A stretch of DNA of 62,000 nt, from NCBI GenBank assembly GCA_951406725.2, contig OX597815.1, positions 35,608,001 to 35,670,000 of the forward strand, given 5' to 3'. Below the pieces are notes generated by a model. The model did no database searches, had not been told where the DNA came from, and worked only from the letters and a program-made list of their open reading frames with translations. A program made the position numbers and the translations under genes. Source of the DNA: Octopus vulgaris. Lineage: Eukaryota. Below are positions 3,188 to 50,200 of this stretch, one piece after another. Every line of letters begins with the position of its first letter. Position 1 is the stretch's first letter.

Positions 3188-3895
3188 ATTATATATGTTT
3201 TGGGCATTATTGGCTCAGACTTTGACTAATTTAATACAATCGATTAAGTAAATATCCTAGTAAATAGTTGTTGTTGACTAAGATATATTCAGGTATACGT
3301 AGTTTGTCCAGATATCGTTTGAAAGTTATGAGATCTTTATATTTGACTTTGTTTTCGAGGGAGGGGGAAAACGAATGCATCGACCCCAGTACTCAACTGG
3401 TGCTTATTTTATCGACGCCGAAACGATAAAGATTGTTACCGCTAAGCATTTCGCCCGGCGTGCTATAAGGAGACCATTCTGCAGCTTTCTCTTCAAGAAA
3501 ATCCAGGTGCCATTTTTACCATGGGCTCTAGACCCCGAAAGGATGGAGCGTTTTGTTCGAAAAGCTTGCTGCGCATTTGTTTTGAGATTTTAAATTCCTG
3601 GATTTTCCTGAAGAGAATGCTGCAGAATGGTCTCCTTATTCAATCCGAATTTGGGAATTTGCAGCCTTTGAAACATGTGTAGAAAATAATAAAAAGGAAT
3701 TTTGTAGAATCTTCGTTCGGCTCCATTTCTTCCCTTCACTAAATATATAAAACTTCAATTATCCGCGCTAAAGCACGGGGGCGAAACCCCATGGTCGTAA
3801 CCTCAACCGTGTCTTTTCTGGTGTGATTTTTGCTACACAGGTATCGGTTAAATTTTGAATAATCCATAACAAGATAATTCATTTATCCATTTCAT

Positions 3896-3951
<56 letters not shown>

Positions 3952-4199
3952 ATTATATATGTTTATGTTTGGCATTATTGGCTCAGACTTTGACTAATTT
4001 AATACAATCGATTAAGTAAATATCCTAGTAAATAGTTGTTGTTGACTAAGATATATTCAGGTATACGTAGTTTGTCCAGATATCGTTTGAAAGTTATGAG
4101 ATCTTTATATTTGACTTTGTTTTCGAGGGAGGGGGAAAACGAATGCATCGACCCCAGTACTCAACTGGTGCTTATTTTATCGACGCCGAAACGATAAAG
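2712..4199 (+). repeat. Near-identical ~730-bp tandem duplication (2712-3432 and 3464-4199)
   Basis: Both units start tataaggagaccattctgc and end tttatcgacgccgaaacgataaag. They differ mainly in (TA)n length, one small indel and a short insertion in the MITE spacer. Confidence 0.9.
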
Positions 4200-4303
4200 G
4201 ACAAAGTCGACCTCGGCGGAATTTGAACTCAGAACGTGACGAGGGACGAAATACCGCTAAGCATTTCGCCCGGCGTGCTAACGATTCTACCAGCTCGTTG
4301 CCT
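4145..4303 (-). mobile_element. SINE family A (tRNA-derived), older copy
   Basis: Reverse complement has an A-box-like tggtagaatcgttagc, a B-box gagttcaaattcc and the shared core gtcgactttg..tttcgg..gtcgataaaataag. Confidence 0.85.
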
Positions 4304-4319
4304 TGTTTCCGAATAACAT

Positions 4320-4898
4320 TCTTTTCTATTCTAGGTACATGGCCCGAATTTCTGGGTATGGAGGCCAGTCGATTAGATCGATCCAGTATGCAACTGGTAC
4401 TTAATTTATCGACCCCGAAAGGATGAAAAGCAAAGTCGATCTCGGCGGGATTTGAACTCAGAACGTAAAGACAGACGAAATACCTATTCCTTTACTACCC
4501 ACAAGGGGCTACACACAGAGGGGACAAACAAGGACAGACAAACGGATTAAGTCGATTACATCAACCCCAGTGCGTAGCTGGTACTTAATTTAACGACCCC
4601 GAAAGGATGAAAAGCAAAGTCGATCTCGGCGGAATTTGAACTCAGAACGTAAAGACAGACGAAATACCTATTTCTTTATTACCCACAAGGGGCTAAACAC
4701 AGAGGGGACAAACAAGGACAGACATAGGTATTAAGTCAATAACATCGACCCCGGTGCGTAACTGGTACTTAATTTATCGACCCCGAAAGGATGAAAGGCA
4801 AAGTCGACCTCGGCGGAATTTGAACTCACAACGTAACGCAGACAAAATACCGCTAAGCATTTCGCCCGGCGTGCTAAAGTGTCTGCCAGCTCGCTGCT
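4320..4898 (-). mobile_element. SINE family A stacked array: one head, two young-tail units, one old-tail unit
   Basis: Head at ~4860-4898. Tail-to-internal junctions gacgaaatacctatt at 4474-4490 and 4658-4674. The last unit has a different tail (ggccatgtacctagaatagaaaag). Confidence 0.9.
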
Positions 4899-5040
4899 TT
4901 GTTTCTGAGTAATATTAAGAAGGGAATAAAAACGCATGGCCTGTTGAGGAAAAGTAATTGTGTTGCAATGCGATTATGTTTGGTGAACCTGGATTGCGTA
5001 TAGAGGAGAATCCGAGCCTTTCCTGACCATTTGTGTAGAC

Positions 5041-16892: not shown

Positions 16893-17121
16893 GGCGGCGA
16901 GCTGGCAGAAACGTTAGCTGGCCGGGCGAAATGCGTAGTCGTATTTTGTCTGCCGTTACGTTCTGAGTTCAAATTCCGCCGAGGTCGACTTTGCTTTTTA
17001 TCCTTTCGGGGTCGATAAATTAAGTACCAGTTACGCACTGGGGTCGATGTAATCGACTTAATCCGTTTGTCTGTCCTTGTTTGTCCTCTCTGTGTTTAGC
17101 CCCTTGTGGGTAGTACAGAAA
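16893..17121 (+). mobile_element. SINE family A, full-length young copy with TSD
   Basis: Intact head to the tail gtgggtagtacagaaat. TSD agg(t/c)atagggcacagaa at 16876-16892 and ~17122-17139. Confidence 0.92.
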
Positions 17122-17245
17122 TAGGCATAGGGCACAGAAAGTGTGTCAATAGCCAGCTGGAGATGATGTTCTCCCGGAGCTACAAGCTACAGTAGCATCC
17201 ACCCTTAGTGGTTAGCCACATTTAAGTGGCAAATATACTTCAAAA

Positions 17246-37136: not shown

Positions 37137-37362
37137 ATACCTATTTCTTTATTACCCACAAGGGGCTAAACACAGAGGGGACAAACAAGGACAGACATAG
37201 GTATTGAGTCGATAAAATCGACCCCAGTGCGTAACTGGTACTTAATTTATTGAACCCGAAAGGATGAAAGGCAAAGTCGACCTCGGCAGAATTTGAACTC
37301 ACAACGTAACGACAGACGAAATACGGCTACGCTAAGCATTTCGCCCGACGTGCTAACGTTTC
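37137..37362 (-). mobile_element. SINE family A, young tail
   Basis: aatacctatttctttattacccacaagggg...tgctaacgtttc. Confidence 0.9.
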
Positions 37363-37651
37363 TCGGCAAAAAATAAATACATGGTGAAGGATTCGTGGTC
37401 TTGTTCGAATACATGCCATAGAATGAACTCCATTGTATACATCTAAAAACCGATTAGCGGTGGTAAACCAGGTGGCATATTGGGATATTCATTGACATAA
37501 CACTGGGTTGCCTCTCGCACATACACTTCACCATCTGATGATAGATGTTTTATCATATATATATTTTGGGAACAATGGCATCATCGATTATATATTTTCT
37601 CTGGTTCACTTACATTTCGGAGAATAAGAGTGAGATGGGAATGTATGTTTC

Positions 37652-39014: not shown

Positions 39015-39497
39015 GGCGGAGAGCTGGCAGAAACGTTAGCACGCCGGGCGAAATGCGTAGTCGTATTTCGTCTGTCGTTACGTTGTGAGTTCAAATTCCG
39101 CCGAGGTCGACTTTGCCTTTCATCCTTTCGGGGTCGATAAATTAAGTACCAGTTACGCACTGGGGTCGATGTAATTGACTTAATACCTATGTCTGTCTTT
39201 GTTTGTCCCCTCTATGTTTAGCCCCTTGTGGGTAATAAAGAAACATATAATGATGATGATAGCGTGGAGGGCGGCGAGCTGGCAGAAACATTAGCAGGCC
39301 AGGCGAAATGCGTAGCCGTATTTCGTCTGTCGTTACGTTGTGAGTTCAAATTCCGCCGAGGTCGACTTTGCCTTTCATTCTTTCGGCGTCGATAAATTAA
39401 GCACCAGTTACGCACTGGGGTCGATGTAATTGACTTAATACCTATGTCTGTCTTTGTTTGTCCCCTCTATGTTTAGCCCCTTGTGGGTAATAAGGAA
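39015..39497 (+). mobile_element. Two full-length SINE A copies in tandem, each preceded by the same 24-bp sequence
   Basis: tataatgatgatgatagcgtggag at 38991-39014 and 39246-39269. Copies at 39015-39245 and 39270-39497. Confidence 0.92.
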
Positions 39498-40010
39498 AGA
39501 AAAAATGGTGGTGACAATGATGATTATCTTGACAACGACCGCAACTACGGCGACAACAACGACGTCACCAAAGACTGCGAGGACGACGATGATATATTTC
39601 TTGTACGTTTAACGATGGTAATAACCATGACCCGACGACGACGACGACGACGATGGTGAGGATTATTAGCGTTTAACATGACAGGAATAGTAGCAGTAGT
39701 TAGTTTCAGCAAGTGAAAAAGAAAACAAGTGTATGACCTACTCACAACATCCTAATACGTCACACATTAGTTAGTGTATGCGCGCGCTTGTATGTACGGG
39801 ATCTTTTACTCGTTTTAGTCAACGGACTAACGTCCATGCTGGGGCATTGCCATAAAGGATTTTAGTCGAAGAAATCGCCCCCAATTTTTTCTTTTGGAAG
39901 GGCGGGGTTGTCTTTTTAAAGTTTGCTATTATATATCGGCCTCTTTAGGCTAAGTTACAAGGACACCCGATGGCAAACCGTGGTGGATAACAAACACAAA
40001 GACACAGGCA

Positions 40011-48083: not shown

Positions 48084-48527
48084 ATTATTATGTAAAAGGT
48101 GGCGAGCTGATAGAATCGTTAGCACGCAGGGCGAAATGCTTTGCGGCACTTGGTCTGTCTGCACGTTCTGAGTTCAAATTACGCCGAAATCGACTTTACC
48201 TTTCATCCTTTCGGGGTCGATAAAATAAGTACCAGTTACGCACTGATTCGATGTAATCGTCTTAATCCCTTCCCCCAAATTTGAGGCCTTGTGCTTCCAG
48301 AAGAAATAATTATTATTATTATTAAGATAGTCAGGTGGCAGAACTGGTAGCACGCCGGGTAAAATGCTTAGCGGCATTTCGTCCGTTTTTGCGTTCTCAG
48401 TTGAAATTCCACCAAAGTCGACTTTACCTTTCATGCTTTCGGAGTCGATAAAATAAGTACCAGTTGAGCACTAGTTTCGATGTAATCGACTTAGCTCCAC
48501 CCCCACCTTGTGTCTTTAATAGAAAAG

Positions 48528-48584: not shown

Positions 48585-49319
48585 GAGTGCCACGTAGTAT
48601 TACTGGCTCATTCGTCTCAAAAATTAGTCGTAGACCGTTTAGAGAATAACTAACGTTTTGGGTGGATCACGTTATAAATAGATTCTCCTACTCTTATACA
48701 GAAGTAGTGGAGTTATAAAAATATATATTTATAGCAACATAAACTGAGACAGCGAGACAAGTTAATTGATCAAGCCATACAAGTGGATCGGTGTTGGTAA
48801 CAACAGGATGTCATTCGTCGTTCCGTCATCTCGTAATCCAAACAACCAACCGCATCTGTCAACAGTAGCTATGTTTTTGAATCCTTGTCACAAAAATCTA
48901 AACACGTACATTTAAAAATGATCAAATTTCAGGTTCTGTGACCGAAACAGTTATTCTCTAACAAAATACCTTGCTGTATTTGATTGAAATTTCTTCACGT
49001 TTTGATTTCAAATCTCACCGAGGTCTTTCATCCCTCTGAGGTCGATAGAATAAGTTTCCAGTCAAGTACTGGAATCAATGTAATCGACTCCCCCACCCAC
49101 ACACACAGCCTCAAAAACTGCTGAAATTATTGGAGAGGTGGATGAAATGTCCGAATCGTTGGAACGTCGAAGAAAATGCTTTTCCGTATTTGTTCCAGCT
49201 TCGTATGCTCAGAGTTCATATGTCACCTTTTGGAATCGATAAAGTAAGGTACCAGTCAAGTATTTATAATTTTTCGTTATAATCGAATATTGCAGCCTCC
49301 CTCAAAATTGCGCTTGAAT

Positions 49320-49930
49320 TGGTTTCAAATGTGTGGCACAAGGCCAGCAATTTCGATGGCGGAGTTAAGACGATTACTTCGACTCCAATGTTCAACTGGT
49401 ACTTATGTTATCGACCTTGAAAGAATGAACGGCAAAGTCGACCTCGGCGGAATTTGAACTCGGAACGTAAAGATGGACGAAATACCTATTTCTTTATTAC
49501 CCACAAGGGGCTAAACACAGAGGGGACAAACAAGGACAGACACACGGATTAAGCCGATTACATCGACTCCAGTGCGTAACTGGTACTTATTTAATCGACC
49601 CCCGAAAGGACGAAAGGCAAAGTCGACCTCGGCGGAATTTGAACTCACAACATAACGGCAAACGAAATACCTATTTCTTTACTACCCACAAGGGGCTAAA
49701 CACAGACGGGACAAACAAGGACAGACAAACGGATTAAGTCGATTACATCGACCCCAGTGCGTAACTAGTACTTATTTAATCGACCCCGAAATGATGAAAG
49801 GCAAAGTCGACCTCGGCGGAATTTGAACTCAGAACGTAACAGCAGACGAAATACCGCAAAGCATTTCGCCCGGCGTGCTAACGTTCTCACAACGTAACGG
49901 CAGACGAAATACCGCTAAGCATTTCGCCCG
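49320..49930 (-). mobile_element. Second SINE A stacked array (duplicated head, two young-tail units, one old-tail unit)
   Basis: Junctions acgaaatacctatttc at ~49477-49492 and ~49662-49677. Old tail ggccttgtgccacacatttgaaacc at ~49320-49350. ~55-bp head duplication at ~49835-49930. Confidence 0.9.
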
Positions 49931-50200
49931 GTGTGAAAACTTGCTGCCTTAAAAGATTGTGTCTAAATTAAAGATAATTAAGGGCAGCGAATTAGCAGAA
50001 TCGTTGGCGCATTGGGCAAAATGTCTTGCAGTATTTTGTTGCATCATTCTGTTTTGAGACCAAATCCATTTTGTGCGTGATGTAACATTACGACGACTGA
50101 TGACAACATTTCGACAACGAAACATTCAACGATGGAAGTTTTAACGAGTTTTAAAGAATAAAGTCATGTGAAATGTTCGGACAGGCATGTAATGCGAAAA

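Follow-up and report, generated by a model that had tools for sequence, protein, structure and literature searches.

Head-to-tail arrays of a short interspersed element in Octopus vulgaris share one tail-to-body junction

Two arrays and the elements that compose them

A 62,000-nt stretch of the Octopus vulgaris genome (G000:C2:35608001-35670000; hereafter the window, to which plain coordinates refer) contains two arrays assembled head to tail from parts of a short interspersed element (SINE). Both are read on the minus strand, which is their sense strand. An earlier note on this DNA had proposed that the element stacks into older copies of itself at one exact internal nucleotide, and that the resulting multimers share the promoter of the resident copy. 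Locus-level statistics were obtained from 336 kb, namely the window and loci L001-L050, which were ascertained on exact junctions; about 200 bodies were compared. Genome-wide counts refer to the 2.8-Gb assembly of 227 contigs.

Three SINE families share a 51-nt head (H), which ends in GCGGTAT, and a 118-nt body (B), which begins with TTCGTC, and differ only in their tails, designated Y (the 'young' tail of the earlier note), O1 and O2. The Y tail is 61 nt long and ends in AAAGAAATA; internal copies are followed by GG and then directly by TATTTCGTC of the next body, which gives the tail-to-body junction J1. The O1 tail ends in ...aaatttcgggccttgtgcctagagtagaaaagaat, often with (ATT)n after it, and the O2 tail in ...aaattgctggccttgtgccaaaatttgaaaccaatatt. 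A Y monomer measures about 230 nt and an array unit about 184 bp; target site duplications (TSDs) of 9-29 bp differ at each locus. The head carries an A-box-like (TTAGCACGCCGGG) and a B-box-like motif (GAGTTCAAATTCC). Neither Rfam (E<=10) nor ARAGORN called a tRNA in it, and it is to be termed tRNA-derived only by virtue of these two motifs. RNAfold predicted a 13-bp head hairpin (CGGGCGAAAUGCU-UAGC-GGUAUUUCGUCUG), and the junction point lies 2 nt 3' of its apical loop. The junction itself, GAAATA-GG-TATTTC, is a 6+2+6 palindrome, and the ends of the 184-nt unit (UAUUUC...GAAAUA) are mutually reverse-complementary.

Locus 1 has the composition that the earlier note had described: one head, body plus Y tail twice, and a body with a different tail. 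The single 51-nt head (4847-4897; ending ...GCGGTAT, 90% identical to the head consensus by BLAST) comprises the A-box-like motif and the 5' arm and loop of the head hairpin. It is followed by unit 1 (4669-4846; body 4730-4846, Y tail 4669-4729), the first J1 (GAAATAGG/TATTTCGTC, the slash marking the joint; 4658-4674), a chimeric unit 2 (4485-4663; body 4546-4663, Y tail 4485-4545), the second J1 in the variant form GGAATAGG/TATTTCGTC (4474-4490), and unit 3 (4318-4479), in which an O-type body (4367-4479) carries an O1 tail (4318-4366). The array is bounded by an outer TSD whose 5' copy (attactcagaaacaaa, 4898-4913) matches the 3' copy (gttattcggaaacaag, 4302-4317) at 12 of 16 positions; all four differences are transitions, and the core reported by the TSD finder is 11 nt with one mismatch. 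The next SINE head begins at 4301.

The units of locus 1 are of mixed relationship. Units 1 and 2 differ at 17 sites and have no rare variants in common, while body positions 1-86 of unit 2 match unit 3 with two mismatches and the remainder is Y-type. A 36-mer with the variant pair a40 and t51, shared by units 2 and 3, was considered as a private variant and rejected as such; with 59 exact copies genome-wide it is a rare lineage marker. The same pair also occurs in consecutive units elsewhere (G000:C3:169056740-169057143; C18:27888147-27888370) and could serve to trace the spread of arrays. Adjoining the array is a local duplication with a period of about 770 bp (3200-3465 and 3990-4301), in which a SINE with head, body and a third kind of tail (gcattcgttttccccctccctcg) is present twice together with more than 180 bp of flank; in the copy at 3372-3465 the head and body position 53 have become adjacent through an internal deletion. 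The duplication does not include the array.

Locus 2 had been regarded as identical in architecture; its 5' end is in fact different and consists of a head remnant, a body stub and a second, truncated head. The upstream head, assigned to the resident, carries an internal deletion (49909-49948) and is followed by a stub of 23 nt of body (49886-49908). An incoming, 5'-truncated Y monomer (49672-49885) comes next, with head positions 17-51 at 49851-49885, body at 49733-49850 and Y tail at 49672-49732. Its tail meets the third J1 (variant ...TATTTCGTT; 49660-49677), at which the right TSD copy lies at about 49644-49671. Beyond it are a resident Y unit (49487-49666; body 49548-49666, Y tail 49487-49547), the fourth J1 (49476-49492) and a terminal unit (49318-49481) with body at 49365-49481 and an O2 tail at 49318-49364. 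The claim of four junctions of one form in the window held. They read aaagaaatagg/tatttcgtc, aaaggaatagg/tatttcgtc, aaagaaatagg/tatttcgtt and aaagaaatagg/tatttcgtc, and have (G/A)AATAGG/TATTTCG in common.

One junction and one target word across the genome

The 17-mer spanning the junction (GAAATAGGTATTTCGTC) is present in 42,654 exact copies (21,051 + 21,603), compared with none for the reversed control, which excludes chance. The exact Y tail, represented by a 20-mer, was counted 95,614 times; GGTAT comes next in 52,719 of these cases and GGTATTTCG in 30,576. Correction rates were derived from the other junctions of multi-junction arrays, used as an unbiased sample: the probability of an exact 17-mer is 0.74, that of GGTAT given a junction 0.97 and that of TTCG given GGTAT 0.88. 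Correction puts the number of junctions at about 58,000 and the share of exact Y tails in an internal position at about 37%.

Arrays are short and variable. The first 3.6 Mb of contig 1 hold 100 exact junctions in about 80 arrays, with up to four in succession, and six in a row at 184-bp spacing were found at C1:4037446-4038366; the number of units ranges from 2 to at least 7. The 336-kb sample comprised 20 H-B-Y, 17 H-B-Y-B-Y, 6 trimers and a few tetramers, together with about 15 arrays of the form H-(B-Y)n-B-O1/O2 and 18 H-B-O1 elements. Y tails are the only tails that run into bodies in this sample, O1 tails never doing so. In about half of the arrays the terminal tail is likewise Y rather than O1 or O2. 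Flanks and TSDs differ at every array locus, and haplotypes at 14 polymorphic sites are mosaic and lack position-specific alleles. The terminal O1 units of 14 arrays are as distant from one another as solo O1 copies are (0.188 vs 0.195), with no clustering and no shared rare variants among these 14; they are a random sample of O1 copies.

O1 elements themselves also occur in chains (H-B-O1-H-B-O1..., often with (ATT)n between them; L016:1276-2263 and window 48101-48493), which points to insertion of O1 elements into the microsatellite tail of their own family.

A preference for GGTAT is also present at sites outside the element, in line with the idea that the tail primes on (A)GGTAT-like targets. 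By a genome-wide estimate, GGTAT follows about 30% of terminal Y tails, compared with about 0.1% expected from base composition. The five bases that follow 56 terminal Y tails are GGTAT in 12 cases and TGTAT, GATAT or AATAT in 12 more. Among about 17 clear cases, the TSD begins with (A)GGTA(T) in six (L007, L023, L025, L050, L038:3538 and window 16894); it begins with TGTATTT at window 31728 and at L027:2406. At L027:736 and L032, TAGGT or CAGGTAG stands between tail and TSD, which implies that some template RNAs, at least, ran past GAAATA into GGTA. Two free-standing Y monomers of the window had been put forward as examples. The one at 16894-17128 (plus strand) has, as claimed, a TSD beginning with AGGTAT (17 nt, agg[t/c]atagggcacagaa). 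The one at 37142-37363 (minus strand), whose head starts at position 14, is followed by ggtatt as stated, and its TSD is unclear.

A pair of tandem Y monomers lies at window 39016-39498, each preceded by the same 29 nt (tataatgatgatgatagcgtggagggcgg); it represents either a duplication of a SINE with its flank or a 29-bp TSD beside an earlier copy.

A second exact junction joins the Y tail to head position 14 (AAAGAAATA/AGAAACGTTAGCAC). It was counted in 2,078 exact copies, again with a control of 0, shows AGAAA microhomology and involves mostly tails of the GGGCAATAAAG allele; cases in the sample are L004:722, L008:1337, L013:1817, L034:5074, L040:2970 and L041:5145. This junction follows the same logic as that with the body. 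Head position 14 is approximately where the 5' end of a tRNA (the RNase P site) would be expected, as reckoned from the A-box-like motif.

No partner long interspersed element (LINE) bearing the Y tail was found in the 336 kb; such a partner would carry the 3' end ...TGTGGNTAATAAAGAAA. The final 42 nt of the Y tail also terminate a different short repeat, about 200 nt long (...tgtggctaataaagaaa; L031:1945-1986, L036:6011-6052, L049:8301-8342). This repeat lies between (CTAT)n or (CT)n microsatellites, contains AATAAA and may use the same LINE partner as the Y SINE. As the LINE partner itself it was rejected, being an element of about 200 nt between (CTAT)n runs and not a LINE. At L041:9084-9260, a 5'-truncated Y copy with a 14-bp TSD carries about 13 A's directly after AAAGAAA; together with AATAAA in one tail allele, this copy suggests that some Y RNAs may be polyadenylated.

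Insertion, duplication and retroposition in the formation of arrays

That insertion into resident heads occurs is shown by nested copies that retain two heads, and the element's own head region is thus a target, as had been supposed. At L025:1276 a full-length Y monomer lies within a strongly diverged resident. Upstream of it are the resident's head, still in place, and 14 nt of its body; the TSD is 17 bp long and has the sequence aggtatttc[a/g]tc[t/c]gtct. At locus 2 the tail of the Y monomer runs into GGTAT and body positions 1-23 of the next unit. The stub behind the resident head would be the left copy of a TSD of about 28 nt (GGTAT plus body 1-23), judging by the structure, a rare G19 allele and 238 stubs elsewhere. 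The two 23-nt copies differ at two positions, both CpG transitions, and have the G19 allele (8%) in common. The sequence match of the stub was itself rejected as proof of a TSD, 69 of 155 bodies matching equally well. The genome-wide pattern for two-head stubs (GGTATTTCG followed by GGCGAGCTGGCA within 14 nt) gave 238 exact cases, mostly GGTATTTCGTCTGCCG/AAGGCGGCGAG, and none in the control. Typically, a stub of about 16 bp separates the head of the resident from a new full-length one. A TSD made from the host element with the host head kept upstream is a minority form.

Some two-head stubs recur at spacings of 59, 65 or 230 bp (G000:C1:194001252/194001317, C6:120813009/120813068, C5:38515285/38515515), suggesting tandem runs of head plus stub that arose by repeated hits or by duplication of stubs. 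Body position 22/23 (..CTGAG/TTCAAAT, just before the B-box-like motif) was encountered twice as a break point (L028:1512-1540 and window 49886), in unrelated contexts: the 3' end of a retrocopy at L028 and the end of the TSD stub at locus 2.

The earlier note had also supposed that the 5' end is resolved by homology with the resident, and there is evidence that it can be. The four-unit array at L038:4660 lies between two copies of a 79-bp repeat in direct orientation, each comprising 51 bp of unique flank and body positions 1-28. The body part of this TSD derives from an old headless resident, whose private 4-nt deletion it includes. From the left copy the sequence passes in register into a new body; annealing to the SINE sequence of a resident can thus resolve a 5' end. 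Units 2 and 3 of locus 1, L047 and L029 have 5' blocks of the body in common and then diverge by family; at locus 1, units 1 and 2 have dissimilar 3' halves, an observation that speaks against unequal exchange inside this array.

Arrays also expand locally. Units within an array are closer to each other than units of different arrays (0.086 vs 0.106; 0 of 2,000 permutations reached the observed value), and the nearest neighbour lies in the same array for 22 of 84 units, compared with 1.5 expected. This closeness stems mostly from arrays of at least three units. Units 2 and 3 of L038 are identical, those of L047 differ at one position and have four rare variants in common, and near-identical adjacent units are also present at L035, L001 and L018. 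These are local duplications of the 184-bp unit, and they offer one route from SINE to satellite of the kind that had been envisaged. Most dimers consist of unrelated units, their pairwise distance being about the sum of their divergences.

Junction-bearing RNAs have in addition been retroposed. Locus L028 has the structure H-B-Y-J1-B(1-22) within a 23-bp TSD, inside an antisense older SINE, and is most simply explained as the retrocopy of an RNA that already contained the junction. RNA polymerase III (Pol III) terminates at runs of T; the SINE consensus contains no TTTT, and Pol III should therefore read through arrays.

We take it as established that the junction arises when Y copies insert, by target priming, at GGTAT in the head hairpins of resident copies, that homology can resolve the 5' end, that arrays expand locally and that junction-bearing RNAs are retroposed. 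In the mechanism proposed here, Y RNA would carry ...GAAAUAGGUAU at its 3' end or just beyond it. Pairing of the nicked target with this stretch, in the course of target-primed reverse transcription, would favour (A)GGTAT sites. Because the same word stands beside the hairpin loop of every resident head (GCGGTATTTCG), such heads would be frequent targets, hit in a fixed orientation, and the join would always be GAAATAGG/TATTTCG. When the 5' end is joined without homology, two heads would be kept with a TSD stub of about 16 bp between them. More often a single head would be left, the new cDNA annealing to homologous resident sequence; annealing is suggested by the surviving head, which matches the incoming (Y) type from about position 14 on. 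Arrays would then grow by further hits, by local duplication of the 184-bp unit and by retroposition of read-through Pol III multimers. In-place self-targeting is accordingly our preferred explanation for the origin of the arrays and a major part of their number, with a probability of roughly 55%. We infer the pairing of the RNA 3' end with the target, the replacement of heads by annealing and the share of each route; the approximately 58,000 single-head junctions may stem from in-place stacking with head replacement, from retroposed read-through multimer RNA and from template switching. Of the 'one exact nucleotide' of the earlier note, the shared junction stands; it does not by itself demonstrate a one-base hotspot, as any register of GGTAT microhomology would give the same junction.

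A bolder version of self-targeting is tentative. The Y SINE might be a self-homing retroposon, in which homology at both ends inserts a headless unit seamlessly. Read-through RNA would carry the start of the next body (GGUAUUUCG...) past the tail as an RNA guide, and this guide would pair with the nicked head hairpin of any resident. If true, a SINE would turn into dispersed, growing tandem arrays by retroposition, and a defined molecular route to a satellite would be at hand.

Several observations weigh against in-place self-targeting as the main source. Two-head copies, the sole direct proof of insertion into a resident, are rare: they account for 2 of about 70 arrays in the sample, and the 238 exact stubs compare with the roughly 58,000 junctions. 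A TSD of about 16 bp combined with joining in register predicts that neighbouring bodies are alike at positions 9-11, yet family alleles differ there in at least 10 of 58 pairs, and a TSD-like excess of shared variants between adjacent bodies was not found in positions 1-20. The O-terminated arrays L025:2409 and L037 have perfect outer TSDs of 17 and 18 bp. The sample itself is limited to the 336 kb and was ascertained on exact junctions.

The ages of the units provide no support either, and the description of terminal units as older was not borne out. In Y-terminated arrays the first and last bodies are equally diverged (0.036 each) and carry similar numbers of singleton variants (1.91 vs 1.79). 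O units are more distant from their consensus than neighbouring Y units (0.073 vs 0.044, p=0.009). Singletons, scored against an equal-sized reference panel, show no age difference between them (2.51 vs 2.19, p=0.64). Consensus divergence as a clock, which had placed a young head and young Y units on an old O unit, was withdrawn because mismatches of O heads and O bodies are uncorrelated and because singletons are alike; the extra divergence of O units is heterogeneity of the family. The body of unit 3 of locus 1 is almost free of singletons (0.1 vs 1.9 in the Y units), and a greater age of this unit is thus not demonstrated.

A further objection concerns the heads. Those of O-terminated arrays are Y-type, with 2.3 mismatches compared with 4.6 in solo O copies with comparable bodies (p=0.001). 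They resemble Y heads over positions 14-51, and only positions 1-13 are intermediate (0.153 vs 0.094 and 0.237). The resident promoter is thus not simply kept and shared, contrary to what had been proposed. If a resident O element was hit in place, the incoming head replaced nearly all of its own, crossing over close to the 5' end; the alternative is an array made from RNA. Under stacking, Y-type heads require this additional step of head replacement, whereas they follow directly if arrays are RNA-made. Linkage between head alleles and unit alleles in solo copies was too weak to assign the heads of arrays.

It is accordingly possible, though we consider it doubtful, that multimer transcripts are the main route or multiplier and that most single-head arrays are retrocopies of Pol III read-through RNAs. 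Nested insertions, few or many, would have made the junction; transcripts would start at the downstream, incoming head, and reverse transcription would begin at the last tail, Y or O1. The TSD-flanked copy at L028, which ends inside a second unit, and the lack of a TTTT terminator fit this explanation. So do the Y-type heads of O-terminated arrays, whose first body is Y-type up to the junction, the perfect outer TSDs of L025:2409 and L037, the lack of an age difference among units of one array, and the template-derived GGTA 3' of the tail at L027 and L032. It is opposed by the terminal O1 units of 14 arrays, which neither cluster nor share rare variants, and by the O unit of L037, in which a 42-mer with four variants is unique in the genome, so that no sibling or source copy is visible. 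Multimer transcripts alone cannot create the first junction, and L038 and the two-head copies are events at the DNA level. Of the multimeric alternative that the earlier note had allowed for, transcripts of multimers are supported by at least one junction-bearing retrocopy, and a single master element is excluded.

Template switching is an unlikely source. Reverse transcriptase would move at the hairpin, via GGUAU microhomology, to the 3' end of a Y RNA, and each retroposition event would build a chimeric multimer cDNA. End-to-end template switching by non-LTR reverse transcriptases is described in one preprint (bioRxiv 10.1101/792986). Switching would explain the Y heads of O-terminated arrays, the heterogeneous O units, the fresh outer TSDs and the restriction of internal tails to Y. 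No direct trace of it was found, and it needs Y RNAs that end exactly at GGUAU, where no terminator is present; the two-head stubs and the L038 TSD with its unique flank stay unexplained.

Tandem duplication purely at the DNA level, by unequal exchange or replication slippage, is very improbable as the process that both made and expanded the arrays. The near-identical neighbours in arrays of at least three units (L038, L047, L035, L001, L018) and the greater closeness of units within arrays (0.086 vs 0.106) are expected from it. It cannot, however, give one junction at about 58,000 loci with different flanks, and the units of most dimers are unrelated; it accounts for expansion and is refuted as the origin. 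Descent of all arrays from one master dimer or trimer, or from one duplicated locus, has only the shared junction in its favour and is refuted by unit numbers of 2 to at least 7, by terminal tails of three kinds (Y, O1, O2), by mosaic haplotypes and by differing flanks and TSDs. A retrozyme-like origin, with rolling-circle copying of a circular RNA of one 184-nt unit, can be practically dismissed: the ends of the unit are reverse complements and the headless L038 array seemed to start at TATTTCG, but this start is explained as a TSD, no hammerhead or other ribozyme family was matched in Rfam (E<=10), units are non-identical in most arrays, and arrays normally carry one head.

Relation to known systems and significance

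Two systems offer precedents for the proposed ends of the reaction. In L1 assays attributed to Symer in 2002, Gilbert in 2002 and 2005 and Zingler in 2005, 5' joining is said to be mediated by homology or microhomology and to yield chimeric L1s. As in those assays, a new cDNA would anneal to a resident homologous element and give a 5' junction in register; such joining is reportedly occasional there, whereas it would be usual here, the target itself being a homologous copy. For R2, Luan and Eickbush are said to have found in 1996 that initiation is guided by downstream 28S sequence on the RNA template. The Y SINE would be similar: transcript sequence lying 3' of the element would base-pair with the nicked target and determine where reverse transcription begins. 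R2 reportedly relies on a sequence-specific endonuclease and a single-gene target, whereas here the target is a dispersed repeat and the pairing would be of the kind proposed above.

Self-insertion hotspots and tandem repeats of SINEs are already known; the scale and the preserved intermediates are notable here. An insertion hotspot at a single nucleotide has been described for Alu into Alu (Levy, Schwartz and Ast 2010, PMC2836564). The two cases have in common self-insertion at a preferred, nearly single-nucleotide site, in a fixed orientation and according to the target preference of the LINE machinery. They differ in that the inserted copy in O. vulgaris usually loses or merges its head, that headless 184-bp units stack, that roughly one in three tails of the family is internal, and that the target word matches the 3' end of the element itself and not an A-rich endonuclease site.

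Squamate satellites derived from SINEs, for which unequal recombination and repeated insertion into one locus were proposed (Vassetzky et al. 2023, PMC10702118), and tandem-like SINE arrays of bivalves (PMC11481361) are likewise head-to-tail arrays of SINE parts, which in O. vulgaris are locally expanded. Those papers do not define a mechanism that forms the junction, whereas one junction at about 58,000 sites is accompanied here by TSD evidence. The arrays here are also short (2 to at least 7 units), and the status of a heterochromatic satellite is not claimed for them. Dimeric and composite SINEs, such as Alu and the tRNA dimers and trimers cited in PMC4758252, also combine two or more SINE-derived modules under one Pol III promoter; their architecture is fixed and inherited from a master, whereas unit number and terminal tail vary by locus here and position-specific alleles are lacking. 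The literature searched yielded no account of this junction, nor any of SINE arrays in cephalopods. SINEs make up 11.6% of the O. vulgaris genome, and a 2026 repeat annotation of the species lists 893 'unclassified SINE' families among its recently active elements (PMC13282606); in a search of its text by terms, nested elements and satellites proved to be unmentioned, and SINE arrays are not discussed.

The link between SINE-into-SINE hotspots and SINE tandem repeats has so far mostly been ascribed, loosely, to unequal recombination. In O. vulgaris, one family supplies tens of thousands of identical junctions together with rarer unresolved intermediates, and the route from interspersed to tandem repeats thereby becomes dissectable in sequence and testable at the bench. 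As roughly one tail in three of a major SINE family is internal, repeat annotation, copy counts and age landscapes are distorted wherever each array is treated as one or several independent insertions.

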